A stretch of 64,000 nt of DNA from Epiperipatus broadwayi (GCA_028023455.1 JAQFVV010000009.1:10106001-10170000); one strand, 5' to 3'; positions 10,151 through 64,000 are shown, numbered from the stretch's first letter. Numbers and translations: made by a program. Notes: generated from the letters alone by a model not told the origin.

Positions 10151-10257
10151 AAATAAAAATTGAAGTGACAAAATTTCTTTCAATTCCAAATGCAATAATC
10201 CATAAACTAATTTGATACTTTTATTTGTAACAAATTTAGTCACTTCAATTTTTATTT
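10151..10257. repeat. Small inverted repeat (MITE-like)
   Basis: AAATAAAAATTGAAGTGACAAAATTT (10151-10176) versus AAATTTAGTCACTTCAATTTTTATTT (10232-10257). Confidence 0.6.
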
Positions 10258-17220: not shown

Positions 17221-17610
17221 CATTGACTCAATTCTTTTAAAACACAGGGCTGATTTCAGAATATTACTTATTTTTCTTTATTAAATCAATAAGTTTTTTT
17301 TTTTCTCATTTAATAAAAGTATTTTATGACTTTTTTGGATTTATTGCTCATTATACTACAATGCATTTTATTAAAGATATGTTAATGTATACTATATTTC
17401 TAAACCTTTATGAAAAAAAAAAAAAACTGCAAAGAAAAAACTTGCTTATAATATTAATGATTTTATTTAAATCATGAAGAAAACATGCTTTAAAAATTCA
17501 TATTTGAGAATGTTATATTTAGCAAGAAAAAAATGGTAGTTACTGTTAGTTATAAAATTTAATAAATTTGTGAATTTCAATGCTATTTAAATTTTTTTTA
17601 TTAGTGTATA

Positions 17611-24549: not shown

Positions 24550-27500
24550 GGAGACGCTTTGATTCCTCTTAGAAGTCTTAAAGGAACATAGCGGGGGGAA
24601 ATTCCTAATGTCCACTCCATACATTCTTGTTGCAGCTGTTATTACTATGCGATTATTCATATAGTATACGAATATGGATGGCTGCTTACCAATATGCATT
24701 AGTCAACTATGAGTTTATTGGCTTTTTACCTCTGAGTTTAAGATCAAGAAACATCATGGTCTTTCTTCTCAGCTGCCTGATAAGGCAGAATGAATGTATG
24801 TGCAAATGATAAGTATTTTATCAATACATACATACAATCAACAAACAAAAATAAATCATGGCCGTTATTAACAGGAGGCTATAAAGTCACCAACCAAGGC
24901 AGCGGTTGGTGGCTGAAGGCAGAGGTTGCTAAGAATCCCCTGAATGTGAACCCAGGCTGCCATTAGATGACAACTTTTTATTTAGGTACTTACAAGTGCA
25001 GATAACTTTCAAGTGAAGGAAGATTGCAAAAAATGAGAAAAAGTACTGTCTTATATTAAATGGGACATTATAGGACTTTGCGAAGTTAGAAGAAAAGGTG
25101 AAGAGACAATTATTTAAAAAGTGGACGTGTACTATAAAGGCACAAATATTAGAAATACAAATGGAGTCGGATTCATTATAAATAAAAAGTGGAAGAAGAA
25201 CCTTGTGGAGACTGATGGTGTATCGGACAGAGTGGCAACATTAGTTATACAACTTAATAGCACATACCAAATGCAGATACTTCAGGTTTATGCCCCAACA
25301 AGTTCTCATAGTGATGAAGTAGTAGAAGATTTTTATATGCATGTACAAAAAAGATTTTGATCAGAGTAAACATTTTAAAATTGTTATGGGAGACTTTAAT
25401 GCTAGAATTGATAAAAAAATACAAGATGAAGTGCTGTAGATAATTTTGGGTTATGGTAATAGAAATGAAAGAGGACATAGACTTGTGGAGTTTGCAAAAT
25501 AAGAAAAACTTTATATTATGAATTCTTTTTTTGAGAAAAATGTTAAAAGGAAATGGACATGGAAGCATCCAAATGAAGTTACAGCAGAATTTGATTATAT
25601 TTTGACTAACAGAAAATACATATTTCAAAACTGTAAGGTTCTTAATAAATTTAACACAGGAAATGATCAATGATTAGTAAGATGTAAGATACGTGTTAAT
25701 GCAAAATTAGAGACAAAAATTATTAAGAAAAACAATATTTATAATTGATATTCCTATTTTTCAAAAACATTCTAATGAATTTAAATTAGAACTTACAAAT
25801 CGGATTCAAGTATTAGTAGATTTTGAACATGATTCAGATTTGAATGAAATTAATAAGAAAATAACTTATACACTTTTAAAAACTGCAACAAAAAATAGCT
25901 AATAGAAAGATGCAGCAATTGACCAATAAAATTTTTACCGAGACTAGAGAATTTATGAAGAAAAAAAGGAATATGAAAATATATAAAAATGATGCATGAA
26001 AAAGGCTCGAATTTTGTAAAATGGTGCAGAAAAGGGGTGAAAATGATATAAGAAAATATAACTGTGAACTAGCAAAGAAAGCTCTAGCAGAGAATAAAAG
26101 TCTCAAGAGTGTAAAACAACCCTTTTGGTATTGATAGAAAATTTATGTCTGCAATAAGAAAAAAAGATGGAATTATTACTAAAAAGAGAGATGACATCAT
26201 GAATGGGTAGAAGACTTCTATCAAGAATTATATAGTAATAAAGAACAAGTACCTCCTATATCTATTGTATCTTCCGAATTGCCCAAAATTTTAAATGAAG
26301 AAATGAGACATGCAATTAAATTTATGAAGAAAGAAAAAACTTCAGGTAATGATGAAATTATAATTGATATATTAAAAAAAGCACGTGAAAAAATAGAAAT
26401 TTTTTTAGTAAATTTATATACCAAAATATCTAAATGTCAAAGATATACCAGATGATTGGAAAAATGCAGTATTAATATTTTAAAAAGGTGATAAAGAAGA
26501 TATTAGAAATTACAGATCTATCAGTTTTTTATCAGTTTCATACAAAATTTTTACCAAGATAATTACAACTCGTCTACAGAGAACATTGGATTTCTACCAA
26601 CCAAGAGACCAAAGTTGGATTTAAAAGTGGTTTTAGTACAGTAAATCATATCCAGGTATTGAGAGAAATTATAGAAAGGACAAATAAATATGAGTTGCCA
26701 TTATGCTTTGGATTTGTAAATTATGAAAAGTCATTTGATTCTATAAATATTTCTTCAATGATTAAAGCATTGGATCATCAAGGTATAGATCCAGGATATT
26801 GTCATATGTTGAAAAATATTTATAAAAATGCAACAGCAACAATTAGATTACATAATTATATTAGGAAAGTCAACATTGAGAAGGATGTAAGACAGAGCGA
26901 CTCCATATCTAAAAAAAATTTTACAGCAGTGTTGCAAGAAGTATTTTGTGGATTGAAATGGGAAGTTAAAGGGGTGAAAGTAAATAGAGATTATTTAAGT
27001 CATTTAGATTTTGCAGATGATGAAGTTGTTTTTGCAAATAATGCTTTAGAGCTGGAGGAAAGGTTGCAGGAGTTATCAGATGAAAGTAGGACTAAAGATA
27101 AATGTTAAAAAGACTAAAGTAATGTTCAATTGATTTTCTCAAAATATGAAAATAAAGATTAATTATGATGAGTTAGAAAAAGTTAATAGCTATAAATACC
27201 TTGGTCAGATTATTATTACAGTTGGAAACATAATGGATTAAATTAATCATAGAATTAAACTTGGTTGGAGTGCTTTTGGTAGAAATAACTTGATACTAAA
27301 AGGAAATATGCCTAAAAGGAAAGTTTTTAATAAATGTATTTTACCAGTTCTTACTTATGGATCTGAGACTTGGATACTTAATATAAGAACAATACAGAGA
27401 CTTCAGACCACTCAAAGAAGTATGGAGAGATGCATGTTATGAGTAACAAGAAAATATAAAAAACGCAATATATGGATAAGAAAACAAAAATATATTACTG

Positions 27501-39310: not shown

Positions 39311-42300
39311 ATTAAATATTTACATAATTGTTAGCATATTATCTATCCATTATATAAACAACATACAATTTCCTGCTGTCATTACTTGAGCTAGAATCTG
39401 ACTGTAAACATCAAAAGCATGCTCAGCAAGTTAAATGCTTTATAAATTTATAGAATCATACAAATTAATATAAAAATATATATTCTACTTGTTGGAATAT
39501 ATCAGTCTCTGTTTATAGTCAGAAGATCCAACGATCTTATATTTGCGATAGCAAAAAAAAAAAAAAGATTGCAAAAATTAGGGATTCATAAACTTTTTTC
39601 AAAAAAAGATCATGTAAACAATTTTTTGATGATGGTGGGCCAGAGAAATAAATTTTCTAAAAACCATCTCTCTCTTCTCACATTATCATTAAAAACAAAA
39701 AGTTTTGAGAATCAAAGCCCAAAATGATTAAATAACTCATTTACTAATTGTATGTCATATTAAACAAATTCAGAAAACTTAATTTTTTTTATTTCTTTTT
39801 GTTTTTTAGTATATGGTGAATGCCATTATTTCTACTTACTGATTTTTTTGTAGCATCATAAAAAAAACAGGTGTAAAGATGAACAATTGTTTACAATGAT
39901 ATATATTTCCAAAAATAGATAGCACTTATAGGTTGTCAATGGATACCAGATAATAATACCAACAAAACCCTCAGTAAAAATTATGGCTATTGACACTTCC
40001 ACAGCCATAATTAACTTTTTATACATTTCACTAAACAACAAATATATATTTTGGTGACATCATTTCATCTGTTAACTGCAAGCATATTTGATAAGGAAAT
40101 TGATTCATCTTTCAAGTCATTAATTTGGCAAATATAAAAATTAGCACGTGTAACACACAGCTTCTCACTAACAAAGGTCAATAGTCAAAAAATGTAATAG
40201 GGAATTTGGATGACAATTATCAATTTATATTTCCAATAAATTGATCTCAATACAGATAGTTATTATGATATTCTAGCTTAATGACTATTGCTTTTGACAA
40301 TCATTAGTTATTATTGAAACAAAGGTCACATTAGCATTTATTTTATATAATTTTTTAATAATTCTATTTGGTGGAGCTCTAAAAATAGTCTGCCTAGAAT
40401 TATAAATCCTCACGTCAAAAAAAAAAATAGATAATTTACAATTAGTATAGATCAGGAACTGTTAGCTCTAGAATCACATGCAGCTCTTTTTATCATAATA
40501 AACATAAACACATTTTTTATTCTTACTTGAAATTTATAAATAAATGTTTTTATGGCTCTAAGAAAGGCAAAATGAGCTTTTTTCACATTGCTCTTTGGAT
40601 TCAGTCTTAATATAGTATAATAATTACTGTATACTGATGAATGTTTAAATAATAGAAATTTGTGAATAAATCAAACTATCACAGTAATTTTTTGTTTATT
40701 TATTTTAAAAGAATTTCAATTATCTGTACAGTGATGTTCAAATACAATCACAACCATCCAGAAATCTATATTTTTCATCAATCTATTTTTCACCTCCTTC
40801 CTTGCTGTTCTTTTAATTTTTTTGATAGAGATATTTAAGCCAAATGGGTATTCATGTTAAAAGAATTTGTAATCCCTAATGTAGATGAATAAATAAAAAC
40901 TGTAACAACAGTAATAATAAAATCCATTATCCAATTTTGAATATTTCTGTAATGTAATTTTGAATGACTAAATATACTTCCGTTGTCCAATTTGTTCTCA
41001 AAACAAAGTACCTTTTAAAATTTACACTTATTAAAAATGATTTAATACATTCATGTACTTGCATTACATTTTACAAATTTCAACTTTTGATCATTAGTTG
41101 CATTTTTTCCAGAATAAAACTAATTCGTAAATCTTATTTATAACATTAAACAAAGAACAAATTTAATAAATAATTGAGAGAGATTCCTTTAAAAAATAAA
41201 TACTTTAATACATATATTTTCTAAATTATAAATATTTGTTTTAGAAATTTAGCTTTTTAAAAATATATATTGAAATTAATGGATTATATTTGTAAAAAAA
41301 AATAGTGAAATATTATAGATTTTGTAAAACGTAATTAATTATGATCAGTAAACATTTTTTTAGATATTCCTTTATCGAAGCAAAACAATAAAATGCAAAC
41401 ATATTTCACACAATGGGTAATAATTTGAAATATATTAAAAAATTTAGGAAATAAATATTGAGAATATTTATAATTTTTGTTATTTTTCAATTATTATTTA
41501 ATTTCTTTATTATATTTATATAAATTGTTTTTATAAAGAATAAATATCAGCAAGCAGATAAAATCTTATGTTGTGGATCAGATCATGCTCATGGACTAAA
41601 GTTTGAGGACCTTTGCTTGACATAAAAAGAAATTGATTAATATATGTTGTAGTTTTAACATTTTAAAATTTATCTATGTATATTGAAGGGTTTTTTTTTA
41701 ATTGTTATTTTTGTTTTTATGCTTGTTATGAAACTAGAATAAATTATTGGAGGATATTATAAATAAAAAATAATTAACAAACAATGCCAGTTTCAAAACC
41801 TCAAAATATAAGCCTATATATATAAGGGCAACGATAGGTATAAAAAAGTAAAATTATAATTAATATACTGAATGTGAAGAGGTTAGAGGGGACAATGTGA
41901 TATAAGTAGAGGCATCTTACATTAGGCAGAAAAATGATAATAACAAGAAAATAAACATTAACATCTTTATATATATATATATGTACTGAATCCCACTTAT
42001 TATAGGTAAACTTTTATTCTTTTATATTTTCCTTATTAAGAATTTAATACTTTATCTTAAATTAAAAAAAATAAAACAAATCGGGTTAATACCTTTATAT
42101 AGCTTAAACAAAACGCAATTATCTAATATACTTTCAACTACATATAATGTTCCAAGTAGTACTTTAAATTTATGCACTACTACAATGATCTTTACTTTTG
42201 AAAATGTAATTCTAGTCACTAATTAACAAAAGTACAATGTTGAATGATATATAGTCAATATTTTTGAATATAAAATAGTGACATCTAGCGATTTTTATAC

Positions 42301-42677
42301 AATTCATTTAGGTAAAGAAATTACAAAACATTAATGATTTATAAGTTTTTATAGTAGTATTATATAAAATAAATTACTACTAACAGCGTTTCTTTCATTA
42401 CAATTAATCATTCATTGAAAAATAAATGTACGCAAAAAAAAAATCAAGGAAAAAAATTATAATTTAAAAAGCAGCTTAATTTTACAGCTGCTGTTAGCTA
42501 ATGTAAATAAACATATTTGAAACGTCCTTTTTATTAAATCTCTTGTTAAACTTTTTTTACCCTTCATTAATTTATTTTGGTTAACTAACCAGCTTATGAT
42601 GTAAAGTTTAAATACTAATATAATATATCATAGATATTGTTTATATGTCTCTTGTAGTATTAATTTATCAAACTTAC

Positions 42678-42806
42678 CCACTCATTTTCTTTTGCATTAA
42701 ATCTATACAATGCAACATGACTAGCCATATCAACAATGTCTGTGATATAAGGATCACATCGTTGTAAAACCGCTAGATTCATACGTCCTTCTGCAACATC
42801 CGCCAT
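42678..42806 (-). CDS. DCP1: mRNA-decapping enzyme subunit 1, first coding exon (43 codons, phase 0)
   Basis: MADVAEGRMNLAVLQRCDPYITDIVDMASHVALYRFNAKENEW matches the N-terminus of the Dcp1 EVH1 domain (MNLxxL...DPYI..I......VALY.F....N.W). Followed by a canonical GTAAGT donor at 42677-42672. Not in the supplied ORF track. Confidence 0.93.
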
Positions 42807-43766
42807 CTTGAACAATAATTCTGCGCATGTTATTCTGATAACTCATTTAATTGTAACCCAAAGTATTATTGGTGTATAAAAGAACATTTAATGTATTATT
42901 AAGAGTTTTAAATATCAAATATTTATTAAAGAGAACAACTATAAAAATTATAATGAGAATAATAAATATTTTTTAATTAATGAATTTTCATTTATACTTA
43001 GCCATTATTAAAACTTTACAAACACGTGACATGAATTTCTCAAGGATGCTGACAGTGATGAAATAAATTCAATGGAAAACTATAACTAGAACATATTGAT
43101 TCCTAAAATAAATATAATCTGCAAGGATACGCTTTTTTGTTGTTTTGAAATTAATGAAATTACAATTATTTTAATAAGCAAATAATGAAAATGTTTCTAT
43201 CATTTATATAAAAATGAATTTAAACATGTACTTAAATGTTTATTTTAGAATAAATTTATAAAATATGTAAAGCTGTTTAAGGGTTTTTCGTAGAATTCTT
43301 CGGACTCGTTTTGATCAAAAATAAAATATTGTTAAAGCAAGTTTGTCAGCAGTGTATTCTGGGTATTAAAAACATGATATTCTGAGTAGAGTGCCCGGAT
43401 GATAAAATACAGTATTTCGGTATTATGGGGAAAATAGACGGAGCTTGATTGAATACTTGAGGATTATTTTTATTTTTATTTTTTTTTTTTACAATTTTGG
43501 CCGTTTTGTGCAATTGTAAAACCATGGTTTCTCGACATTTGGGTAAAGTGTTCTCTCTTATATTGTTTCTGTGCGTGTTTTAGTGATGTATTTACAATTG
43601 AAGTATTTAAAAATCAAAGCGATGTGGAAAAAGTCTGCGGGTTAAGATGGCAGAGTCGCTGTGGTAATTCATATATCTCGGGATGCTGATTATAAAGGAT
43701 GTGCACGGATGTTGTTTAACAGTCGTATGAATCTATTGTGATTAATCTGAAGAAACGGAAATAACA
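42807..43766. promoter_or_regulatory. Bidirectional promoter / 5' leaders in a CpG-retaining island
   Basis: 960 bp between divergent ATGs. CpG density from ~42.3 to ~45 kb is much higher than in the flanks. YY1-like AAGATGGC at the DCP1 start and at 43644-43651. Confidence 0.7.
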
Positions 43767-44155
43767 ATGGCGTACAGTACTGATTCTGGATATATTTTTT
43801 CAGAATTAAATAATGAACGTGAGCATAACAACGGCAGGGCCTTGGGTGCATCAGGATCGGATTCGGCGGCAATTGCTACAGCGCCCACCCAAAATAGGAT
43901 ACCTGGTTCTACGACACAACTCGGCACATCAGGCTTACAAGAAACTGCAAGTCCTGCTCCTGCCAAAACTGAAATTAAACCTCTTAGTAGTGCATGGCAA
44001 ACAACACTGAGTGTAGCCAGTGCTGCGACCATGAACCGAAAACGGAATGCACGAAAACCCCCCGGAAAGCAAGAAAATCGCCCTACAAGGGCTTTATTTT
44101 GTCTTACATTAAAAAATCCCCTTAGAAAACTGTGTATCAGTATTGTGGAATGGAA
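43767..44155 (+). CDS. Ca-alpha1D: L-type voltage-gated Ca2+ channel alpha-1 (Cav1; CACNA1C/D orthology group), first coding exon
   Basis: ACAATGG start with an in-frame upstream TAA (43743). Contains PLSSAWQ and [26 protein letters not shown], the diagnostic Cav1 N-terminus/IS1 entry. Ends at a U12 donor in phase 2. Confidence 0.95.
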
Positions 44156-45730
44156 ATATCCTTTTGAAAATTAAATTTTTATTTATTTATGTATATTTTT
44201 CTCTTTCTCATTTATTAAATTAAAACATAATTCATTCCAAGAATTAGTTAACAATATGCTATAAGCCTTGACTACGCGCTGTGTTGTAATTTGCTGCCAC
44301 ATGTATGGATCTTTAAATTTTCACTTGGAGGCAACTATTTTAAAGGGACGCTATTATTTAAGATATTTAGTGAAGCTGTCACGCACTCCTCTTTTCAAAA
44401 CTAACATTCCTAAAAACTGTTGCTGAGAAAGGGGAGGGAAATAATTCAGAGCCTTTACACTATCAATTTTTATGGATACGTTATCATTAAAGCTTTCATA
44501 GTAAAAAAAAAAAAAAAAGTACAAGAGTCAATTTACAAATCTTTTTTTATTTTTTATGAATGTAAAATCTATTCCCTTTTCAGTTATTATTGTGGCGCAA
44601 TAAATCTTAATGAATTGAAAATACATTACTATATTTAAACAATGATACTTTATATATATGAATACTAATCAAATATAATATTTAAAAATGTGATTAGTAC
44701 AATAATTAAATAATTTAAAGAATGAAGGTTGACTTATTTCTAGTAAAATAAATATCGTATCCGGTATTTTTGAAAAATAAATATGATGGAGAATGTGTAA
44801 TTAATGGATTTTAAATAGAAATTAGTTAGCATTGTTTTAACCTTCAAATTCATCGAGAATTATTAGAAGTTACATAACCCAGATTTTATTTAAAAATTCA
44901 AATCGTGTTAAAAAAATTTACCCGATATTTTTTTTTTTCGGGGCGATCAAACGAAAAGTTAATTTAACTAGGCAAAATCTTTCTTATATATGTTATTCAA
45001 TGATTTTTATTGTAGATAAACTTTCCTGAAAAAAAAACAAGGATCCACTTTCTTTCAAACTTTTTTACTATTAAATAAATATATAAAATAATAATAATTA
45101 TGAATTTTAACATAGAAAATATAAATTAAAATTTTGCTACTTATTATAGTAAATGTAATCAAAATGAAGCATTAAAATGATAATCAAATGAAATGAAAAC
45201 TATAGAGAGAGAGAACATTTAATAAATATTACATTTTAAACATAGTAATCTGTTAAAGTACAAGTCTAATACTGTAATTAGTAATCCTTGTTGCAAAGGA
45301 TAGCTTTTTAAAAATGCCTAAAATGTGTAATTTTAAAATGATTTTTTTAAGTCTACACAATTTATTAATTAAGCAATTGTACAAATAATATAAAATTTAT
45401 CCAAAAAAAAAAAGAAACTAGAAACTTTCTATCTCTGACCCCATATGTTTTTATTTAGATCAGTTACATGCAATGTTTTTGGAAACATATTACATTAGAT
45501 GCTAAAGATAATCAACGAAAAAACAATCTACGAAGAAAGAAGATAGGGATTAATGTTCCTTTTTTTACTGCCAAGAATTTGAGTTTGTTTTACCTGTCAT
45601 AAACTATGCATGAGTTTTGTTTTTGTATAACTCCCATAAAATACTTTTATAGAAAATTATTGAAAGTAAAACAAAATTTTTCAAATTCAAAACATCCATT
45701 AAATTAAATAAATGTTTCTGTAGAAATAGA

Positions 45731-45812
45731 TTATTTTTGAATAAGATATTTTTAAATCATAAAATAAATAATTATTTTTAAATAAGATATATTTAAATCA
45801 TAAAATAAATAA
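45731..45812. repeat. 41-bp tandem duplication
   Basis: TTATTTTTGAATAAGATATTTTTAAATCATAAAATAAATAA occurs twice with two substitutions. Confidence 0.75.
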
Positions 45813-48699
45813 TTTTGTTTTTAAGCCATATTATTAGCTCATTTTATTTTGTTTATTATCTTCCAAAATAGTTTTTATTTCATTTGCTAATATTCAAATT
45901 TAATTTTCAGTTTTCTTATTTTCAATGTAAATAATTTCCATCTAAGATAGCTTATAAATGAGACATAAATGTTTCATTGAACCTGTTGAAATAGTGTGTC
46001 ATAGTTTTTTTTATTATTTACTAACTTCATTTTCTAAGTTTTGCATAGTGTGGAACAAGAAGAGGAATTTCTTGTTCTTCCTAACTATTGAAAAAATAGC
46101 TATGCTATGTTTTCAATACAATAATAACAAAAATAATAATTGATTTGAAAGAAAAAAACAACCTAAATGTTAAACCAAAATAAAATTTAATATTATTTAT
46201 TTTTTAAAAGATAAATGTTCATTTTTATCACTTTTATTTGAGGAAATAAATGTAATTATCAATAGCTAAAGAAAAAAATATGAATTTACATATATAAAAT
46301 AATCATAGAATTGAAAATTACAATAAAATTGCTATAAACTCTGTCTAATAAATCTTGTTGAATGTTCCCATTTTTTTCATTTTCATGTATTCTTTTATCT
46401 GTTCTTTTTGATCCTGGAATCATTGCCATACAAATATATATATATATTTGGTTTGATCATTTCTTAAACTGTCATTTTATTGCGCCTATTATTGACAAAT
46501 CATTGCTCTGATGCAATATTTACTTGTATAGATTTTTTTTTTTTAATTTGAAGCAATTTATATATGTATGTGCAATAACATACACATAATTAGTTTTTTC
46601 ATTTTTATAAATTCTAATAATAAATAATTAACTATAATATATATAAAATAATCTCAAATTCTTTTTTTTATATCTAGGATGCTATTTAAAAATGTAAAAA
46701 GTGTCATATTTTTAAAGAATAGATAATTGAAGGTTTACTTATTTTCAAAAATTCACTACAATTCCAATGCCGCTCCTTTCTTATTCCCTCACAGTAACTG
46801 TTTTACTTCTTTTAAATTAATATACAGTTGCTTTTTAATTATTATATGAAACAATAAGAAATAAAAAAAATCCTGGGAAAAAATGTTTCAATTTTACCAA
46901 AGTTTTAAACTGATTCCTAATACAATAAACTTCATACTTTGAATTAAAGTAAATGCCAAAAAAATATGTTAATTTTTTTATTTGTAAAATTAAAATATAA
47001 AGCAAGATTTCTATTCTTTTTAATAAATAAGTTTGTAACAAAAATGTTCTGTATTAATAACTATAATTAATATTAATTCTGATTTTTTAAAATATGTAAT
47101 TATTATGATATGAAATTAATATATTACGCACACTCATCTTGCAAATAATTGATATGAAAATTTTAAATTATAAAATCTAAAATTACCTTTATGTATACTT
47201 TTATTGTATTCCAGGAAGTATTGTTTTTAATATATTTTTCATTTGTTTTGTTTTTTTCAATCTTTTGAAAAACAATAGATTGAGATCTTACTATAGTATA
47301 ATTTGTGACTCATCATTTTATAAAAGACAATAAATAACAATAAACAAACTTTTTTATCACAATGTAAATTGAAATCTCACCAGAAAAATTAATAATTTCT
47401 TAAACATATTATAAAATCTTGCTTTAACATTTTAACCATAATACATAATAATGACATTATTATAAAATCTTTTTTCAAACTGCAGAATGTACTACTATTT
47501 TCTATATAGCATGCACTTGTTGAACAATTTAAAATTAGAACTTCATATTATTAACTTATTTACCTGTTTATTAATATGGCTCTTTATATATAGATATTAC
47601 ACATTTTCAATGTGGATGCCCATTTTAAAAGTTGCTTCACTTATTTCAAAAAAATAGTTGCCTTTAAGGATGAAATATATTACTTGTAAATAAACATGTA
47701 TATATTTAATTATATAATTTATTATGTATAGTTTATTATCTATAATTTACAATGTATGAATTATATTATCAAAATGTTCTCTGCTGAGTTGTATAATATA
47801 TAAAATAGTCATCTTTATTTACATTTCAGAAATTGGTTACTATGTTCTGTATATCAGGCAATATTTTAATTTTACAATAAACTCAGTAGAATGTGTGTTG
47901 ATGATCTAATTCATATATGTGTGTGTATATATATATATATGTATGTGTGTGCATATTAATATTCTTTGAAATCAATCTTATTATTTTATTTAAAACCTTT
48001 TAAAACAATATATATATATAATTTTAGGCTTGCTATGAAGTGATTTAAGCAATTATATATGCATATGTGTGATTATTAGATATATTGTATATATACTTAC
48101 ACTATCATTTCTGTAATGAATATTGTAACATTTGAACTTTTTTATATTTAAGTGTTTATATTTAGATTTATTTTAAAAAGTGATAATAAATTTTCTATAT
48201 TCATTTAGGTAATAATGGGGCACAATCCTTAATTGATTTTATTATTAATAGAATATTGACTTGTGTTTGAAATTTTAATTGCATTTTTACATAATTATTT
48301 AGCTATGTGCATTTGTTAAATTGAGATTTATTTAGCTGCAATTTCTTACTATTTAGCTATCTAATAGTTTCATGAGATCATCTAAATAAATAATAGAAAT
48401 TAACTTCTGAGTCATAATTATCACAAATCATATGTTCTACATCATAATGTATATAATGTTTTCACCACTAACTCTTGAGTTTTGCTTGTGTGTTTCAAGA
48501 AGTATAAAAGAATACAAATTAGCTCTATACTGTTCTTTATTATCTGTCTATACTATTTGGAGTTTCTTTTTCTGTTTGTATTTTGTGCAATAAAAAAAGT
48601 TATGGGTTTTCAATTTCCAATCATCATTCATTCAATATATTTTAACAACAGTTATAATTTCCTTTCTATAACTTTCATCCATAATTCACTTTTTTATAC

Positions 48700-49850
48700 A
48701 ATGTTTTATTGGAAACTTTCTTGCATCTAACAATCTCTTAATAACTTTTTATAGCATATTGTTTCAAATGCCAAAATTCATCTCAGTGAATGTTTTGTTA
48801 TCACTCATCTTTCACAATCATATAATATATTAGCAAACATGCATCTGGACAATTGTCTGTAAATTGATATCTTTGCTTTTTCAAATCTTATCCATGTTAT
48901 ATTTATAGATATCTTTTTGTTCTGATTTTTTTTAATAATCAAAATCAAAATATTTTATATTGTCTCATTCTTATTTTATTTTTATACTTTCTCTTTTTGT
49001 TTCAATTATATTTATGTACAGCCCATGTCATTTTAATTTTTTATGTAGCATCTCTTCATTTTCTTCAGTAAGTGCTATATTATCTGCATATTGTAAATGA
49101 TTTATTCTCAGTCCAAACTTTTGAAAAAAAATTCAGATATTGTTTGATATTTTTTTCATGAAGTTCTGATTAATCTGTAAGAGTTTTCTTTATATTTTAC
49201 TTTTGTGATGTGATATTCAATTGTTTGAAAGGCTTATATTGTATTAAATGTTGTTATTTAATGAATAGTTAGAATATGTGCTGAAAAAATCCATTCATAG
49301 GATTATATAATATCACACATATTTTCACTTAAATATTTCAATATTTGCTTTGTGAACTAAATTAATATTCAGATAGTCTGCTAATAAATGGAATTCATGA
49401 ACACTAATTGTTTTACAAACTTTTATATCTAATATACTCAAATATGTATTATATTTTCTAAATAATATCTAAAGAAAATTTAATAGATTGAATTATCAGA
49501 GAATTTTCTTGTTTATTAATGCTGATAATGTAAAAGCAAAGTAATAGTAAACTTATATAATTGGGAATTGTGAGACAGAATCTTGTTTCTTATTAATTAA
49601 AGACTGTTAACATCCAATCACAATATTGTATCAAGCTATATAATCAAATAGTCCTGCTTCAGGATTGCATTCTCTAATACTGTTATAGAGGAATTTCTAA
49701 AATTTGATCTAATAAAAAGTTATTGAGAATGAGGTAAAAATTTAAAGCATTAATTTTTGAGTGTCATTTAAATTGGATTTAATTGACTTTTCCATTAGAG
49801 AAATGTGAATGAACTTGAGAATATTATATTAATTCATTGCAATGAATTAA
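48700..49850 (-). mobile_element. Decayed LINE RT fragment inside the U12 intron
   Basis: Minus-strand GLRINHLQYADNIAL (the YADD motif region) at ~49030-49090, plus weaker flanking RT-like segments. Confidence 0.6.
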
Positions 49851-51123
49851 TTGTACTTACAAATACTGTAATTTTTTGTCATTTTTTTTTGTATATTAGT
49901 GAGAGGTCTTCATAAGAGTATTTATCTACAAGGAAAAAATACCTTCAATTGTTTTTATAAAGTATACTGCAGTCTATATAATGATAATGGATTTTTTTTT
50001 CTTTCTTCATTAGATTATAACATATTTTTATCTTTTTCTAAGTAATCAACAATCTCTATAAATGGTACTATAATATTTATAAAGCTTGTGATGATAGTAA
50101 ACACTCAGAAATCAGGAAGTGGAAATAAAAATACTAGGATTATTTATTGCAATTGAAAGTAGATTAATGAAACATGGTAGTGTCTCAAAATAAATCATGA
50201 GAAAGATAATAAATATTGAACAATCTTTTGGTTTGTATATGCTTGCATCCTTTTATAAAGAGATTCACCACATTTTCAAATTATATCATTGATGTGTAAA
50301 ATAACGGCAACATAATTAAAGTCTTACGTTTTTTAGAATGATTAGAAGGTTATATTACAACTATTCTAAGCATTTATCTTTAGTCTGTTTGAAAGTGTGC
50401 TGACTGAAAATGATAATTAAAATAATCAATACATATTTTTATAATAAAATATAAAAAATTCAAGATAAAAATATATTATGAATTCAGCATGTGTAGGAGC
50501 ATGATATTCATATTATTTATTTTTGCAGTGAGTGCATCAATACTTTTTTTGGAATATTTACTGTCTAAATAATAAGGGCTAGATATTCATTTATCAATCA
50601 ATAAATAGTTATATTGCTAAATTGGTTATAAACTAGCTATTTTAAGTTTCTTTGTAAAAAAAATTCCAAGTTTTACATGAATCTAACTAGACCAGATCTT
50701 GGGTCTGATAGGCAGATGGATTAATCATTACAACATTTAAACTCTAAATTGAATCATTATGGTTCTGACAATACTGTAAGTGGAAATGGAAGTAAACTGT
50801 TTTGATCAGTCTATATATTCAGACCATTTTAGAAGGATCAAAAACTTCAAAAGTATAAGTCATGGATCAGATATTTATAATGATTTCACTAGGTAAACTT
50901 CAGATAATCTGTAACACAAATATATAATTTATCATTATTACCTTTTCAATATATAGGAAATGTAAACTACTGAAAAGCATTAAGTAAATTTACAACAAAA
51001 TTATCTGTTAAATATTTTATATAAAAACATTAATAAGTTATGTCAAATATTAATTATAGCTAACAAAATATTTAAGATTATTTATTTGTATTCAGATAAA
51101 AAAAAGATGCAATTCCTGAAGCA

Positions 51124-51185
51124 TTTGGCTCAATAGTCAAGATGTCGGACTAAAAATTTAAAGAGTTTTGAATTGATTTTTGGCT
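51124..51185 (+). mobile_element. Degenerate tRNA-like SINE head
   Basis: TGGCTCAATAGTCAAGATGTCGGACTAAAAAT...GAATTGATTTTTGGC resembles an AT-drifted A-box/anticodon/B-box layout. Confidence 0.35.
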
Positions 51186-52355
51186 ATATAAAGTGAAAAA
51201 AAAAGTCACTTTGGAAAAATAGAAAAAAACTTTTGTGTTTGTAACCCCGATTGTAATTAAATGTCACATTATTTTCTGAATCACTGACCATATTAATAAT
51301 TATTTATGAGTTTCAAAAAACAATACTTGATGTTACAAAGATCAGTGCATTAGATATCAGAAAAGTGATGATTGTTATTGTCGTAATTTGTATCAGTAAT
51401 GATAAAACTTTAATAGATAATCTCATGATAATTTCAGAGGCAACTTTTGATGAAGTTGACCAATTATTTATTATCATGAAATAAATAATTTCTGGTGAAG
51501 TACTAACTGCTACTTGTATGATGATGATGATTCAAAATAGAGGTCTAATTCATTGCAAATACATTTTGTTAATAGTGCATTTATTTTCGAGAAAACATCA
51601 AAAAGGCATAAATGTTTATATATTAATGTATATGTATACTCATTAAAAAAACAACCTCTTAAACAAAAATTATTGAATTCATAAAGAAAAAAAATATTTA
51701 AAATTTAATTATCAATCTTAAATTCGTTGGAAGATATATCATAATTTCAAATATTAGTAGTGCTTTTACTTTATTAGTTCAAATTTGAAAGCAAGCAATT
51801 ATAAGAATATGATAATACAATCTCCAATTTATGATTGATCTCTAATTTTCCACTCTGAATATAATGAATATGTTAAATGTTTGTGTGTATTCTGGAACTT
51901 ATCTGTTTTTAGATATTAATTCTACTTTGGTTAAAGTATATTTACTTTATATTAATTTTATAAATATATCACACATATCAAACAATTCTATTAATAATAA
52001 TTTGAGTTGTATAATAAAAATGTAAGTGCATATTTTTTTTAGATAAAGTAAAAATAATCTAAATTTAAGCATCAGTGTTATGACTTGCAATACCTTACCA
52101 TAGGATAAGAATTCTTTTAAACCTTTTTGAAATTATATAGTACTACTATTCATTTAATAAGATTATGTGCCCAAAACTTACAATTTATTGCTATTATGTG
52201 TTAGTATAAATAGGTGAGCATCATTAAGCTATATTATACAACAAGGGTGTTTATAATAAATTTAAAAAAATATGCATAAGAAAGAAGTGATTAGGCATTA
52301 AAATTAGAAGATTAACAAGTTTAACTTGCTTGATTTATCTAGCCATAATCTAAAT

Positions 52356-53603
52356 AAGGGGTGGGCAGACTTTTATGACTGTAGGCCATATAAAAAAATT
52401 TTAAGATTTCTTATGAGCTTTTTATAAAAAAAAAAAAAAAGTTTAGTTTCGGTACATAAGGTACTCACAATAAAAAAAAAAAAAATTGCAATCGTACTGG
52501 AAATCACCTTTCTATTCTCAACAAATTTCCACAAAATAAAGTTTTTAAAATCTATTTGGGGCAATTTTAGGATAATTTCTGGCATCTTATAAAAAAATAT
52601 GTATATCAAACTTTCAGCCAGGTCAAACTGGTCATCAATAAATATTATGGAAAATAGATGTAGAGGCATTGAAAACATTGACATATAATAATAATGAATG
52701 TTCTTACTAATAGAAAGCATATAGAAGTAAAAAAATATCAGAAATTATTTAGAGTAATGAATTTTTAAAAAATTCTTCCAAATAGAAGATAATTTTTATA
52801 TATTATCATGTTTGTTGATACAATCTGACCTTTTAATGATCTCAATGACTTCTCTGATCTGACATTGTCAGAGGTCTCAATTGGATAGTATTCTAATATT
52901 AGAAAAATCAATATTATGACCTGTATCTATAGCATGGTAAGATAGTGCTATTGATAATGATGTCAGATCAGAGAAGCCATTGAGATTCCTAAAAGACCAG
53001 ATTGTATCAATAAACATTATGATTCATGCAAATTACATTCTATTTGGAAGATTTTTTTAAAAACTCATTAATCTAAATAATTTCTAATATATATATTCTT
53101 TCATTATTATTATATTTCAATGTTTACAGTACCTCTACAACTATTTTTCACAATATATATTACCCAGTTGATGACCAATGTAACTTGGCTGAAATGTTAG
53201 CATATATATTTTTACTACATATAATTACATGTGGATGTACCTAAATAACATTTCATTTATATCTATAGCCTATGAAAATCTTCATTTTAACATATATATA
53301 TATATGTACATATAAGTATGTTTATGTAGAATTGAATTTTGTTCCCATGAAGTGCCAAAATCTTTATGGGCTAAGATGCCTATTGTTGATCAATAATTTT
53401 CATGTATGGGGACTTCCATTTTATGCAATTCAACTCCTGGTTTACCAATAGCTGGAAAACTAATGGTAATATGAGAAAAACATTATTTAACATTTTTGTG
53501 GTAAAATTTTAAAAAAATTTCATACTTAGGTATAGACCGTAGGCCATTTAAATTATCATTGTAGGTCTCATGTGGCTCATGGACTGTAGTTTGCTCAGTC
53601 CTG
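52356..53603. mobile_element. Non-autonomous hAT-like element
   Basis: Ends AAGGGGTGGGCAGACT and (reverse complement) CAGGACTGAGCAAACT, 11/16 identical. 8-bp TSD ATCTAAAT/ATTTAAAT with central TA. Confidence 0.55.
52736..53090. repeat. Foldback / MITE nested in the hAT-like element
   Basis: ~135-bp complementary arms (e.g. TCTCAATGACTTCTCTGATCTGACAT / ATGTCAGATCAGAGAAGCCATTGAGA) around an ~80-bp spacer. Confidence 0.8.
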
Positions 53604-53907
53604 ATTTAAATCATATTTTATAATTTTTTTGAATACATGAAACCAGACTGCACACACATGCATATTATATAGTAAATAAATAGTTAATCTTTTATTTATT
53701 TATTTGATATTTTTAACTTTATGTATTATTAAATTATATATATATTATTTTAAATCATTGTCTGTATTTCTTCAAAGCAATATATAGAATCTTATAATCA
53801 AATATTAGTAAATAATCAAAAATTTTGAAAAGTACAAGAAATATAATTGTCACTTAGGAACGCTTTCGATTATCCTCATAGTCTTTGTCAACTAATACTT
53901 TGAAAGG

Positions 53908-54270
53908 TTAATCTTCCCATAATTCCATGATTTTAATGTTTGCTGCCTGCCTATTAATTAAGTCCTGCTTGTATTTATATATTAGCATATCTTCCTTTAT
54001 TTTCCTTTTATTGTCATTTCTTTCAATTTGCAATATGTTTACATAATTATAATTAAAATTAAAACCACACACACACATATATATATATATATATAATTTG
54101 TTATGGTTATAAAAAATGGAAGCTGATACATTATTATTATCTTTACAATTTTGTTTCATATTCTGAACCCTTTTTAATAAAAGCAAGTGCTCTTTAATTC
54201 TTTTCTCCAATGTACATCTCAATTCCCCTATATATCCATGACCACACCCACATATCCATTTATAAATGAT
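53908..54270 (-). mobile_element. PLE GIY-YIG remnant inside the U12 intron
   Basis: IIYKWICGCGHGYIGELRCTLEKRIKEH...VNILQIERNDNKRKIKE...LINRQ. Confidence 0.8.
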
Positions 54271-54798
54271 GCATTTTTTATTTATAAATGAGGTTTTATT
54301 TTTAGAGTTATTTATTAATGTATAAGTTGCATAAGATGCAATGTCACATATACCTTTATAAATTTTCCTTATGAAATTTGCTTGTTGATTCGAAATATAT
54401 GATATTGATATGAAGAATCAAAAATTTTGATTACTGTATTTACTAGTATTTAATTATAAGATTCCATATATATAAAATTTATGAAATATCTATTAACTTT
54501 AAAAAGATCCAAACAAGTTAATTATTTTATTGGTCTTCTGAAAATGCTATTTTATAGTTATCAATCAGCATGATACCTCCTCTTTCCTCTTATATGCATC
54601 TAGACTGATTTCTATGTAAATTTCTATTTGCAAGATTGGAGACCCCCTTTTTTAAAATTTATATTTATTTATGTATTCATAATAAATACAATTTTTTTAT
54701 TAGTATATAAGTTTATATTCCGTATATATAATTATATATGCTTATTTAGTTAACTTTTTTTTTGAATACTTTCCTTAATTTTATTTCTTTTTTTCTAC

Positions 54799-54904
54799 GC
54801 CTTTTGAATACCTTATATTATTAACTATTTTTGCAAACTGCGTGGCACTTGCAGTCTACGTTCCCTATCCAAATGGAGATTCCAATCTAGTCAATGCGAC
54901 TTTG
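54799..54904 (+). CDS. Ca-alpha1D: Cav1 second coding exon (IS1 helix and IS1-IS2 loop), 106 bp
   Basis: (K)[35 protein letters not shown], followed by a GTGAGT donor at 54905. Confidence 0.95.
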
Positions 54905-57899
54905 GTGAGTATTAATTTTTTTTAATCATTATATTTTTAATTTTTGAGATATGTGATTTAAATATGAATCCACCAGAAAATGTTTATAAAGTTTCTAAAA
55001 ATATATATTAATGTTTTATTAATATGTGCAAATATATGAATTAAATGTAAAAATTAATGTTGATCTTAAGGTATGTTGAGTTTAGTAATGACCTAATTTT
55101 TAATTAAACAATGGCTAGTATATTAAATATTACATGTATAATTTTGATATATGTTTGATTATTTTTATTGTAATATATAAATTATTATTATTTATTTATT
55201 AAATTACCTGTAATACAACCTGAAATTGATATTAATATAAAAATTATTTAATTAAAAGTATATTGTATTTAAAAATGGATAGTAATAATTATGTATGCAC
55301 ATTTGAATGCATATTAAATGTATATAGTTTACTAATGTTAAAGAGAAAACGTGAATATGTGCATTTGTGCAATTTGTATAGACCAACAAATTTTATATTT
55401 TAGAAGTTAATTTATTTTCTAATACTGGTGAGCCATTGATAATCTGAAATTTTCTATAGTTTAAAATGAAATTATGATAGTTACCATTATAATGTAATGT
55501 GAACTAAAAAATTTAGAATATTTACAAAAATTTTAAATTACATAATGCTAAGTTAAAATATTGTATATTGTCAAAATTTTAAAATAACAAATAAAAAATA
55601 ATAAAGGTAAGAAAATGTATGGCATCATATTGAAAAAACAAAAATAGAAAGAAAATTTAAAAATTGTTTACAATGATCACTTTTAGTTTTATAGTAAATT
55701 TTATATTTTTTTAGATTCTATTTAAATTTGAATTTGTATTAAAATTGCATTATTTATAAAATCATGATATATATAGTAGTAACATCAAACAAACAAAAAA
55801 GAATAAATATCAGACTTTGCAATAGTTTTTGTTTTTAAATATTAATTAAAAATAACTTTTGATAAATTATAATTTGAAAGCAAATATATTTCATTATATG
55901 TTTATGCCTAGTATACTCACACATTAATATATATGAGTACTTACCAGTTGGTCCAGGTAATGAGTGCTGTTTCAGTATGAAATGTTTGTCTTGGGAATTA
56001 TACATATTTTTCATGTCTTTGGTTATATGTTTATGATACATGGTTTACACTCCTTCACAAGATGTTAAAAGCAGACAAATCATCTTGTGTGAGAGTAGGG
56101 TAGTGAAAATTACATTACAGAAATAATATTCATTAAGTGAATAATCTCTAGTCTAATGAATGACTAATAAAAAATATTTAAAAAGATTGGTTATATACCG
56201 GTGATTAAATGCTCCTCTTTTTATTGTGAAACTGTGAGGGGGAATAGAGGATGGCAATATCTAACTTTATTTTTAATGTTAGGAAAAAAAACTTTCCTAG
56301 CATTAGAGGAATATATAGGATGTCATTAACACCATATGCCATTTTATGTCAATCATTTTATTATAGCATAATTTTGACATTGAGATGAGCCATTTAAGTA
56401 AAAATTAGAAATATACTTTTAAAAATAGAAGGAAATAAAGCTTACAATAAAATTATGTTAAAGGTATATGATTTGAATTAAAGACAAAAGAATGCAAAAT
56501 GTTTATAAAGAAATAAGAAACCGTTATTTGATAATTTGATCAGAACGTGATGACAGAGGAATAATATTTTTATATACCTTATAAGCACATTTTTAAAAAA
56601 TTATTAGATTCTTTAATAAATTAGCATTTAATTTTTGTTTAATTAATATACAATTAGTATATATTTTACAAACTCTTGTAATTACTATTGTTATTAAATG
56701 ATCATTTTTTATCCTGAAAAATAGGTAATCCAGAAAGATTTGGAAATGAAATTATTAATAGTTAATCTGTAATACCCTGTGCAGTGTCATCTTTTTGGAC
56801 CAATTTTATTCATAAGTTAATATGAAAGTGATTATTAAAATGTTGGTGGCAGCAGGAAACCAATTTGTGAAAAGTTTGTTTTTCATATAATTGACATTGA
56901 TTGTGACTGTCTCAAATATGTCTGCAATCTTTTAAGAAGACATTTGTTTTATCATCTTATTTTGTTTCTGCTGTATGACTGAAAGCTGCATTATATTATA
57001 GTTGTAAGTTTTTGATCATGCACTGACATTCATCTGAGCAATTCACATGATTATCTTTCTGCTGAAAATAAATGAACAATAATTTAATAAACTAATTTTT
57101 AACATTATAGATATTAGCTACTTAAAAAAACCTAAACTAGCTTGGAAAATTCTTAAATACATAAAAAAAAATTAAATATCACCCAAATATGACTCCAGGT
57201 CATGGATTTGACAGGTGAGTAGGTTAACTGAAACCATAAAACTTTTTTATATGTGATATATTAAATCATTAACGAATGTTAAAATTTCCATAATAGTATT
57301 CATCTTTGTTTGTTGTTTTTTTTAAAAAAAAAAGTTTTTTTTTTTTTTAAAAAAAACCCCACTAAAATGCATTATTTTTTATAATTTTAGCAATCTTCAA
57401 AATTATATTATTAGTTGTTCCAGCATAATCACTATTTAAAGTATGGAACCAAATTATATTTTTCTTTTTCTTTTAATCTTTATCTTTATATACCTACATG
57501 CACTGTCATTCTTCTGAGCATTTTTAGTGCTCTTAATAAGCACTCTATTTGGTATCCTTGAAACTTTATAAATAACTCCTTTCTTTAAAATGATTGGATT
57601 TTTATGTATATGTGATACTCAATTATTTTTATGCTGTCTACTATGATGTGCTTGTTCTGTGAATGCACAAATTTTGTGTGTGTGTGTGTGTGTGTACATA
57701 ATTATAATTCTTTAAAAAAATCACAAGATAATTGTTTTTATCTGTCCTAAATTTATTTGAAAAAGTTTACTTTATTTTATAACTAATTACATTAGTATCT
57801 AATAAAAATTGTTTTAAAAAGTCTAAACAAAAAGAAAAAAGAAAGGTTTATAAATATTATAAAGAAACAAAGAAAAAATGAATACAAGTAAAAGAAAAT

Positions 57900-59600
57900 A
57901 AAAGATCAATGGTATTGTAGTTTGAATAGAATTAAATAAAATGGAATGAACTTAATAAAAAATAACAGGAAATGAATAGTGCAGGAAGATACGAATATAA
58001 AAATTTTGATAATAAAAAAAATTAATACAGAGATATTAATATATTGAGAAGATGGATAGAATGATGGATGTGTAATTGAATAGAATAATATGTAGATTAA
58101 AAAAGAGAAAGTAAAAAAAATAGATACCATGGCAGTTGAAATGGTAATAATTATGATAAAATGTGCAATATTTAATTTAAAAGAATGCTTTAATAAAATT
58201 ATATATAACAATAAAATTCCAATGAATGAAAGGCTATGAAAATTAGAATATTATATAATGAAAAAGATTTTAGCCTATTAACTAGTTATAGAATAGTAAT
58301 AATAACATTCATAATTTATAAAATATTTACATATATATATAGTAAAATTAGGATTTGGGTGGAAGAGAGTAAAATTTTGTAAAGATTCACAATGAATTTA
58401 ATTCAGAAAACAAATAGGTTTGATTTATTCATTTTTATATTTGATAAAGAAAACAAACTATTATTAGTTACATTTTTTTGATTTAGGATGGATAGGAATA
58501 GATTGTGGAGAAGTTTTTAAAAATGTAGAAAAAGACTTAAGATTATTAAAATAATTAAGAATCGTTACAATGATAATTTTTATAAATACCAATTCAGGGT
58601 TATAGATTGTAAAATTGTATTAAAATAAAAGATTTCCATTATTAGCTTTATTATTTATTTTGTTTAAGAGATTAAGATGGAAAGATTAGAAATGGATTTT
58701 TCTATAATTAGAAGTAAAAAAATACATAATATAATAATTATCTTTTTTGTCGATTATACAATATTTTATGCAGTGAATGAAAAAAATATGGAACTGTTTA
58801 TAAGAGAAATATGAAGTATGACAATTAAAATTTGGTTGATAAAATAGATATTTAGTTATTTGTTGTTTTGTTAATGGAAAAAAGAATTATACAAATAGTT
58901 GGAGATAAGAATTGAGCTGAAGAACCAATAGACTGAGATTGATTAAAAATTTGCCTTTTTTTAAATATGATAATTATAAGATGTGTAGTGTGTTTTGGAA
59001 GGGGGTGATAGTGATTACGTTCATGTTTGGAAATGAAATATTTTGTATTGTTTAAGAAAAAGCCTAAATTTTTAGATAGAATAGAAAAAAAGTATATATG
59101 CATTCTAGGGAGTTAATGGATTTTTTTTTTAAATGAGGAAAATAAAAAGCAAATTAAAAAGTTTGGGCTGTTACAATATATAAATGAAAATAGATTATAA
59201 AAATAGTGTTTATTTGGCTTATGAAGAAAGGACATCAAACATATGGAGAAAGAAAGGTTTTGGAATATGACAATTTATTTATGTAAGAAATGGGACAAAT
59301 ATGTGGAAAATGTATTACATGTGCACAACTATGAAGGAGGAATGGTGAAAAGGTAGTTAGAGAAAAAAAAATAGAATCATGGAAAATAATTATATAAGAA
59401 TAAATAAATATATAAAATATGCAATATTATATATAACTTTAAAGAAATCTTTATTTCATGCAAAAAAAAAAAAGGCAAAAATAGAATACGGATTTGGATT
59501 ATAAGTGTAATGTTTATGAAGATCGAAAAGAGAGTAGTGAATATTTATTTGAGTATTAGGGTGTTGGAAGTAGACAAGAATAAATTGTATGGAGAGTGAA
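57900..59600 (+). mobile_element. Very decayed LINE ORF2 remnant in Cav1 intron 2
   Basis: Purine-skewed tract with RT-like fragments (IDTMAVEM...LKECFNKI, NYR-like and QIGF-like motifs). Confidence 0.45.
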
Positions 59601-59829
59601 AAGAATTTCAAGATTAAAAAAAATGAAAGCAGTAGAGATTATATGATTTTTTTTTTTTTTTGATTAGGTTTTTATAACAAAAATGGTGAATATGAGGATA
59701 GGATAATGGAACTAATGAAACAATTTTTATTAAATCGTATCAAAGTAAATTGATGAATTAGGATTAAAAGAATGACTTGATGAAATAGATAAGTTTATGA
59801 AATAGATAATGATTATAGATAGTAATAAA

Positions 59830-60775
59830 TCAAGCACTTGATGGGTCCCAAGCACAACCAAATTTTGAGGCCCCCTTATTATAAATACTAGGTAATGTTA
59901 TCAATTTATTACTTAAAAAATACTGATCAATCAATAATTTTCTTAAAAATAAACCTCTGTTTTAAGCCTTTTGCAGTCACAGATATGATTCTGTTTATTG
60001 TAGCATTTAAACTAAAATGCTTAATTAAAAATTTAACCAGTGAATTTCTTTGCTGCAATGCATATTTATCTTTTTTTTTTTCACCTTTTGCGTTTCTCAG
60101 CTTTGCTCTGAAACATTTTCTTCATGCTCTTCATAACAAAGTAAAAAAAAAAGTGATAAGTAAATAAAAATAAAATAAAATAAATTAAATGTTGCCTTAA
60201 ATTGATTTTAATATTTGTTAGTATGATTTTTAGAATCAATTAAAATACATTGGATTTTGTTATTTTAAATAGGGCGTTGATGTTGATTCTATTAATCCGT
60301 GATCACAATAAATAGTGCTTACTTTATATGACATAAATAATAATGTAATATTTCTTATCCTAAAAACACTAATTATACCCAATGGAAGCAGTTAAAGCCT
60401 TTTTTATTTATTCACACAATTTATAGTTTGGAAGAGAACATCTGACATTATTTGACTGGGTAATAAGTACATAAACATATAAAGAATTTTAAATATTATT
60501 TATTACTTAAAATATTTTTTTACAGTTGAAAAGAAAATTTAATTGGTCAAAAATCAAATAGTAAAACTGTATTTCAAATGATAAAAGCAAATTGTTTAGA
60601 TGAAAATCATAACAGAGGTTCATGGAATATATCTATTTTAGATACTGCTAAATTTTGGAGACTCCATGCATATGCTTCTTGTGCATATTGCAAAGGAAGG
60701 TTAAACTTTGCTAACAAGATTTCTGGGCAGATGGCCTATGCTTTGAAATTTGTGATTTCTTAGGAGGGACCACTT
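59830..60775 (-). mobile_element. Possible non-autonomous hAT remnant
   Basis: GC-richer degenerate termini. Minus-strand MKKMFQSKAEKRKR...QQRNSLVKFL resembles the N-terminus of ZMYM/hAT transposases. Confidence 0.35.
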
Positions 60776-63700: not shown

Positions 63701-64000
63701 AAGTTTTATAACTTTCGTTTTATAATTACTTATCCTTTTTTGTTCTTTGCAAAAATCATTTTCGCCTGTGAGGTCACAACTGACTTATATAAATTTGAAA
63801 AATGCTTTGTTTTCTTTTGCAAACTTCCAAACATTAAAAGCCAAGTGAAGGTAAAACAGTTAAAAAAAAACAACAATATTTAAATTGTAATTTTTTCCCA
63901 TAATTGTTTATTATATATATTATGGACCCCCCCCCCCCAGTAAATATTATTTATATATGACATAATGGTGTTTTTTTAAAAAAACAAAAATTGAATACCA

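Follow-up and report, generated by a model that had tools for sequence, protein, structure and literature searches.

The 64,000-nucleotide stretch of Epiperipatus broadwayi DNA analysed here (GCA_028023455.1, JAQFVV010000009.1:10106001-10170000; hereafter the window) holds the starts of two genes, DCP1 and Cav1, that diverge from one CpG-retaining island. They probably form an old and conserved pair, which an interleaved regulatory region is proposed to keep together. DCP1 encodes an mRNA-decapping cofactor, Cav1 an L-type calcium channel. Coding exon 1 of DCP1 lies on the minus strand (42678-42806) and that of Cav1 on the plus strand (43767-44155); the genes diverge from an ATG-to-ATG interval of 960 bp (42807-43766). 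A preliminary description, made from the sequence alone, had given these coordinates for both exons and the interval, and they proved exact. Both first exons are orthologous to those of other animals, are expressed and are correctly spliced. The genome is that of an invertebrate and is AT-rich, with CpG-depleted gene bodies.

The DCP1 first exon

Read on the minus strand, positions 42806 to 42678 translate as MADVAEGRMNLAVLQRCDPYITDIVDMASHVALYRFNAKENEW, starting from an ATG at 42806-42804 and followed directly by the splice donor GTAAGT (42677-42672). The 43 amino acids form the start of an EVH1 domain, of which only the first third is encoded within the window. Their assignment to DCP1, proposed in the preliminary description, is borne out by the Pfam family DCP1 (PF06058: E 2.8e-11, 43.8 bits against a cut-off of 22.5, profile positions 3-38 of 117) and by solved EVH1 domains, to which the exon aligns from residue 1 (Drosophila, PDB 2lyd, E 4.9e-11; human, E 5.2e-07). 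Identity is 74% to residues 1-43 of Saccoglossus DCP1 and 65-74% to exon 1 of distant phyla. It is higher for hemichordate, nemertean and mollusc (70-75%) than for insect and crustacean (53-63%). The exon also has the ancestral structure: 43 codons, with a phase-0 intron after the residues NEW, the last of which is Trp43. The position of this intron is identical in Saccoglossus, amphioxus, Owenia and Lineus, and the intron is absent from the intronless insect genes.

The preliminary description had stated that the exon is absent from the track of open reading frames. This holds at the default length, but a minimum of 30 amino acids does retrieve it within a 51-amino-acid TTG frame (42660-42815).

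A profile of 48 full-length DCP1 proteins, compared with all six-frame segments of the window, recovered exon 1 at E 4e-24. The same search revealed no second DCP1 exon in the window, all other matches having E of at least 4. In the annelid and the nemertean the second exon is a microexon of 42 nt; a targeted scan of the window for such a 14-amino-acid exon yielded no candidate with splice sites. A tblastn match at 40291-40458 (E 0.012) was considered as a further DCP1 exon and rejected, being weak and without profile support. Since the rest of the gene is not in the window, intron 1 must be longer than 42.6 kb: it occupies positions 1-42677 on the minus strand, contains transposon debris and leaves the window. 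DCP1 orthologues from linked loci (see below) carry the C-terminal trimerisation domain (mRNA_decap_C, PF16741).

Positions 41000-46999 were compared with contigs from RNA runs of four close relatives, which differ by about 1-2%; short-sided contig joints in low-complexity DNA were disregarded. Contigs of three runs cover the DCP1 exon (X5, 42678-42923; X6, 42677-42802; X7, 42678-42798), and all of them break at the predicted donor, at 42677/42678. Those of X6 and X7 run on for 42 and 146 nt that match nowhere in the stretch, as expected of splicing. Adapter remnants in X7 identify the RNA as minus-strand for DCP1 and plus-strand for Cav1. The preliminary description had allowed for an unexpressed pseudo-exon; with the exon expressed and its contigs breaking at the donor in X5, X6 and X7, a DCP1 pseudo-exon is very unlikely. 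The 246-nt X5 contig is colinear over 42678-42923, which gives the 5' untranslated region a minimum extent of 42807-42923.

Within this leader the 7-mer CATGCGC, an NRF1-like half site, is found at 42823-42829, 23 nt upstream of the DCP1 ATG; in amphioxus it stands 22 nt upstream. It is followed by TTCAAGATGGCG in both the window and amphioxus, and occurs only once elsewhere in the window.

The Cav1 exons and the U12-type intron

Coding exon 1 of Cav1 (43767-44155, plus strand) specifies 129 amino acids plus two further bases and ends within a Lys codon. It comprises a disordered N-terminus, an NSCaTE-type motif, a second methionine (Met2) and the segment preceding IS1. The earlier reading of this exon as Cav1 is supported by comparison with solved structures: at E up to 1 only L-type channels were matched, namely Cav1.2 (E 1.1e-09), Cav1.1 and Cav1.3. 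Moreover, it aligns to Cav1 exon 1 of Owenia, Saccoglossus, amphioxus and Lineus. In the N-terminus and IS1 the similarity is thus to Cav1 and not to Cav2 or Cav3. The named fragment matches are L-type or 'muscle calcium channel'. The best fragment matches reach at most 53% identity overall, and the best named one is from a horseshoe crab. Many database 'proteins' that match this exon end in KYPF because the donor has been read through.

The Cav1-specific calmodulin-binding motif known as NSCaTE is optional in the family. It is defined as xWxxx(I/L)xxxx followed, 0-10 residues further on, by a methionine, and the pattern is absent from insects except mosquitoes (Taiakina et al. 2013, PMC3634016). 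The window has A76-W77-QTT-L81-SVAS (A76-S85, nucleotides 43992-44021), and Met2 is M89 (44031-44033), four residues past the motif. The amphioxus motif is near-identical (WQTTLSV).

Intron 1 of Cav1 (44156-54798, 10,643 nt) is of the U12 type with AT-AC termini. Such introns are recognised by a 5' end (A/G)TATCCTT, a branch site TTCCTTRAY near the 3' end and an AC or AG terminus, and all of these are present: the intron starts with ATATCCTTTT at 44156, has its branch site TTTCCTTAAT at 54770-54779, about 20 nt before the end, and finishes with CTAC at 54798. The junction is proven by RNA, as X7 sequence continues past 44155 with GCCTTTTGAATATCTTATA, the start of exon 2. The U12 donor ATATCCTT is found in the Cav1 gene of six animals, among them acorn worm, annelid, nemertean, horseshoe crab and spider. 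In amphioxus the intron is of the GT-AG subtype (GTATCCTT...CAG).

Exon 2 (54799-54904) encodes segment IS1 and is followed by the donor GTGAGT; identity to its counterparts in Saccoglossus, Lineus and amphioxus is 77-80%. No further Cav1 exons were found in 54904-64000 using the first exons of four orthologous loci. The window thus comprises exons 1 and 2 of Cav1; the four-domain body, the IQ domain and the C-terminus would be encoded outside it.

Transcript ends and the shared CpG island

On the Cav1 side, a 3344-nt X6 contig is colinear over 43519-44155 and then continues for 2707 nt more. This sets the minimum extent of the Cav1 5' untranslated region at 43519-43766. Junctions with the 5' adapter at 43604 (X7) and 43613 (X10) identify plus-strand RNA. 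The leader contains two short upstream open reading frames, at 43524-43583 (19 codons) and 43647-43667 (6 codons).

The outermost transcript ends are 42923 for DCP1 and 43519 for Cav1, which limits the distance between the two starts to 596 bp. Bidirectional promoters are operationally defined by divergent starts less than 1 kb apart, and here the genes lie on opposite strands with ATGs separated by 960 bp and starts well inside that range. The 595 bp between the contig ends (42924-43518) include a transcribed piece, represented by an X5 contig (43175-43455) and an X10 contig (43291-43455), as well as a T-run at about 43466-43491. Five RNA runs contain the piece, including one that bears the label of the window's own organism, and its end is invariably at 43455, just before the long T-run; the five runs contain 23-33% of the words of 42924-43518. 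If this piece belongs to the Cav1 leader, the gap without transcription would narrow to some 250 bp.

The G+C content of the window is 25%, and its observed/expected CpG ratio is 0.30. The 960-bp interval contains 19 CpG against 4.9 expected at the window background (ratio 1.14; Poisson P about 1e-06). CpG retention in this interval, as claimed in the preliminary description, is therefore real, but the domain is wider than the interval. It spans about 3.3 kb (approximately 42000-45300), resembles a promoter island and covers both first exons, with 58 CpG against 17.9 expected and a ratio of 0.96 compared to 0.26 outside (P about 5e-14). Judged by its CpG retention, the island looks unmethylated and is putatively hypomethylated in the germline. 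The same layout, a CpG-retaining span that connects the two first exons and is flanked by CpG-depleted gene bodies, is seen in Saccoglossus (1.18 versus 0.45), amphioxus (0.95 versus 0.47) and Lineus (0.79 versus 0.46); in Owenia it is weaker.

The 8-mer AAGATGGC, with a YY1-like core, occurs only twice in the 64 kb, both times in the promoter interval (42802-42809 and 43644-43651), one copy facing each gene. The copy on the DCP1 side overlaps the ATG, and that on the Cav1 side begins the 6-codon upstream frame.

Conservation across animals

DCP1 orthologues were gathered with exon 1 as the query, after which their genomic neighbours were examined. In the cephalochordate Branchiostoma belcheri a divergent Cav gene (Ion_trans, GPHH and Ca_chan_IQ domains) lies 2.2 kb upstream of DCP1. 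The nemertean Lineus longissimus has one 3.4 kb upstream, which also carries the Cav1-type C-terminal domain CAC1F_C. In the scallop Pecten maximus the distance is 488 bp, and in the annelid Owenia fusiformis a divergent Cav gene lies directly upstream. In the hemichordate Saccoglossus, where the gene is partly annotated, Cav1 exons 1-2 lie about 8.2 kb upstream on the opposite strand. The divergent arrangement is thus found in all five non-arthropod bilaterians tested, three protostomes and two deuterostomes, with the genes about 0.5-8 kb apart.

Order and orientation were surveyed in arthropods, a mollusc, an annelid and amphioxus, and the pair is divergent in the non-arthropods and unseen, within the DNA available, in two insects and two chelicerates. 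For a millipede and for Dimorphilus no DCP1 gene was on record. In the insects Lycorma and Chrysoperla there is no Cav gene within 10 kb of DCP1, and DCP1 itself is a single-exon, intronless gene (1.45 kb, 10001-11446 of its locus, and 0.96 kb, 10001-10957, respectively). No called gene lies within 10 kb upstream of the DCP1B gene of a shrew. No cnidarian DCP1 was present among the 120 matches listed for the Saccoglossus DCP1 query, which were mostly vertebrate DCP1B.

The preliminary description had argued that, if the sequence came from a protostome, the pairing would predate the protostome-deuterostome split. The survey supports this age. As the divergent pair occurs in protostomes as well as deuterostomes, it is older than their split, whatever the phylum of the window.

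Another shared property concerns the introns of DCP1. In every linked species the 5' introns are the longest of the gene, 10-100 times its 3' introns, and in the linked orthologues they measure 10-49 kb. Those of Saccoglossus reach 48.6 kb and those of Owenia 9.7 and 29.6 kb. In amphioxus a 5' intron of 12.3 kb compares with 0.14-0.65 kb (about 0.3 kb) for most 3' introns. The whole gene extends over as much as 110 kb in Pecten.

Why the pair persists

In our reading DCP1, a housekeeping gene, is transcribed leftward and the single L-type gene Cav1 rightward, both from the one island of about 3.3 kb. A break between them would cut an interleaved regulatory region, and for this reason the pair would persist. 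Such a region would consist of the shared, presumably nucleosome-free promoter island and, most likely, of regulatory DNA for Cav1 (or for DCP1) situated in the long DCP1 5' introns. DCP1 would then be a bystander in a Cav1 regulatory block. The arrangement probably does not couple the expression levels of the two genes. The intronless insect DCP1 genes that lie away from Cav would be retrocopies that replaced the original gene, linkage having been escaped by retroposition. Either a shared bidirectional promoter or enhancers within the DCP1 introns, both suggested in the preliminary description, would fit the transcript ends at most 596 bp apart, the single island and the giant 5' introns. A more specific version, in which DCP1 is captive in the Cav1 regulatory landscape and its giant 5' introns harbour the enhancers responsible for Cav1 expression in nerve and muscle, is put forward tentatively, as a possibility. 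Such captivity would explain the head-to-head retention since the bilaterian (perhaps planulozoan) ancestor, and also the unlinked, intronless DCP1 of the insects examined.

The main rival is that the pair has been retained passively: with starts 1-8 kb apart there would be almost no target for a neutral breakpoint, and the pair would survive in slowly rearranging genomes with neither shared regulation nor enhancers in the DCP1 introns. The spacing is indeed short wherever the pair exists (0.5-8 kb), DCP1 and Cav1 are functionally unrelated, the intergenic DNA is without sequence conservation, and amphioxus, the hemichordate, the annelid, the nemertean and the scallop are slowly rearranging according to the literature. 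Nonetheless we consider this rather unlikely, given that orientation, exon 1 boundaries and a single CpG island have been kept in six lineages more than 500 million years apart and that every linked species has DCP1 5' introns of disproportionate length. In addition, the mammalian pair is adjacent even at tens of kb, where neutral breaks would be easy, and the larger block to which it belongs is described as significantly gene-poor in passages of Robert et al. 2022 (BMC Genomics 23:143, PMC8851819).

Shared regulation could also take a stricter form, with one bidirectional core promoter co-regulating both genes and thereby tying the capacity for mRNA decapping to the expression of the calcium channel. 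This would agree with the distance between transcript ends, no more than 596 bp and perhaps some 250 bp, and with the AAGATGGC copies directed one towards each gene. Both exons also occur in the same RNA libraries, although contig depths are no measure of expression or co-expression. True co-regulation from one core is nevertheless distinctly unlikely, because the spacing varies from 0.5 to 8 kb among species and reaches tens of kb in mammals, and because the expression logic differs between a housekeeping gene and a gene of excitable cells; insects, moreover, manage without the linkage. Finally, the DCP1 piece might be a stranded first exon, either a gene relic or a non-coding promoter-upstream transcript, with the functional DCP1 elsewhere. 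The 42.6 kb downstream contain no other DCP1 exon, and the insects illustrate how an intronless copy at another place can take over from the original DCP1. On the other hand, the reading frame is intact, 65-74% identical to exon 1 of distant phyla and ends at the ancestral donor position; contigs of three runs break exactly there, two of them extending beyond it; and linked orthologues have 5' introns of 10-49 kb in genes of up to 110 kb. We therefore regard a stranded exon as very improbable.

Several points weigh against an ancient pair held by interleaved regulation. The pair is not universal. Apart from the insects, no DCP1 exon 1 was found within 59.5 kb upstream of Cav1 coding exon 1 in the horseshoe crab Tachypleus or within 20 kb in the spider Trichonephila; these genomes are duplicated, which makes both negatives weak. 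Intergenic k-mers across the regions of five species are shared at chance level (111 7-mers against 100 +/- 8 in shuffles), and no conserved promoter element emerges from them. Long first introns are common in animal genes at large, and the contrast between long, linked and intronless, unlinked DCP1 genes is drawn from two insects and is confounded by phylogeny. As for the window itself, an intact DCP1 coding sequence is inferred, with the remaining exons beyond its edge. The contig ends bound the starts rather than map them and come mostly from runs of related organisms instead of the sequenced one, and the piece at 43175-43455 has no assigned strand.

Summarizing, the locus is a compact and deeply conserved divergent pair. 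Two unrelated genes meet at one unmethylated-looking island, and their exon boundaries recur unchanged in at least six animal lineages. With an interval below 1 kb, this species, or a scallop or annelid of similar spacing, is a convenient subject for testing why such pairs persist.

Other elements in the window

Within the DCP1 intron an element of 1.37 kb (17609-18978) is CpG-rich, has 25-nt terminal inverted repeats (84% complementary) and contains a decayed helix-turn-helix-like open reading frame. It looks like a young non-autonomous DNA transposon. The CpG-rich patch at 17-19.5 kb had been a candidate for an intronic regulatory island or an alternative promoter, which the 1.37-kb element with its terminal inverted repeats rules out. 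Apart from the promoter island, the only CpG-rich kilobases of the window are those of this transposon.

A reverse-transcriptase fragment is also present in the DCP1 intron (26659-27105; RVT_1, E 1.3e-4, below the Pfam cut-off); a search of the protein database returned no relatives of similar length. An open reading frame at 849-1325, guessed to encode a GIY-YIG domain, has no Pfam support and was rejected. Rfam and tRNA scans of the window were empty.

Relation to known systems

In Cav and Nav channels a conserved U12 intron of the AT-AC type separates the N-terminus from IS1 (Taiakina et al. 2013, PMC3634016). Intron 1 of Cav1 in the window is at exactly the same position and shows no notable difference, with ATATCCTT...AC termini and an TTCCTTAAT branch site.

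The locus resembles bidirectional CpG-island promoters in its divergent first exons, in the close transcript ends (at most 596 bp) and in the one CpG-retaining island over both. It differs in two respects: the island is defined by the CpG ratio and not by G+C, the genome having 25% G+C, and the housekeeping gene is paired with a tissue-specific channel gene instead of another housekeeping gene.

The linkage of DCP1 and Cav1 is not new, as it was published in 2022. In the passages concerned, Robert et al. 2022 (PMC8851819) describe a planulozoan 'Wnt5-7' multi-species microsynteny block, number 953, as a 'planulozoan novelty'. The members given are wnt5, wnt7, fbxl14, atxn10, erc1/2, cacna1d, cacna2d, ninj1/2 and dcp1a/dcp1b, and the part of the supplement that deals with cacna1d, ninj1/2 and dcp1 credits their linkage to that study. 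The novelty accorded to the pair in the preliminary description was consequently too high. The window adds one more instance of the cacna1d-dcp1 linkage, and the adjacency is confirmed in several phyla; its 64 kb contain two gene starts with their introns and no other members of the block. The passages on block 953 portray it as loose and gene-poor, and within them the head-to-head orientation, the sub-kilobase spacing, the shared CpG island and the DCP1 intron sizes are not discussed. Details that may not have been described before are the conservation of the orientation, the CpG island common to both genes and the giant size of the 5' introns of DCP1. The result is accordingly a confirmation and refinement with added anatomical detail, not a discovery.

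Gene regulatory blocks that include a bystander gene, of which atxn10-wnt7 is an example (Irimia et al. 2012, cited by Robert et al. 2022), are alike in that a housekeeping gene with very long introns has been locked to a tissue-specific gene for more than 500 million years. They differ in that neither this analysis nor the literature examined points to a conserved non-coding element or an enhancer within the introns of DCP1, and in that Cav1 is not a classical developmental regulator.

The closest parallel in human is formed by DCP1B-CACNA1C (12p13.33) and DCP1A-CACNA1D (3p), whose orientation we take to be divergent. The same two gene families are immediate neighbours in human and in the window, but the mammalian spacing is tens of kb, and vertebrates have two pairs after genome duplication against one here. 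In human genetics, the CACNA1C/DCP1B and CACNA1D/DCP1A boundaries are sites of association signals for psychiatric and metabolic traits, and recognising an ancient regulatory unit there would aid their interpretation. If DCP1 is indeed captive, this would make evolutionary sense of CACNA1C and CACNA1D risk variants on the DCP1B and DCP1A side. Of what the preliminary description stated about these human pairs, it is the adjacency alone that published work supports. For instance, the splicing of DCP1B is affected by a variant that lies in the CACNA1C 5' region and contacts the DCP1B gene (PMC10172764).

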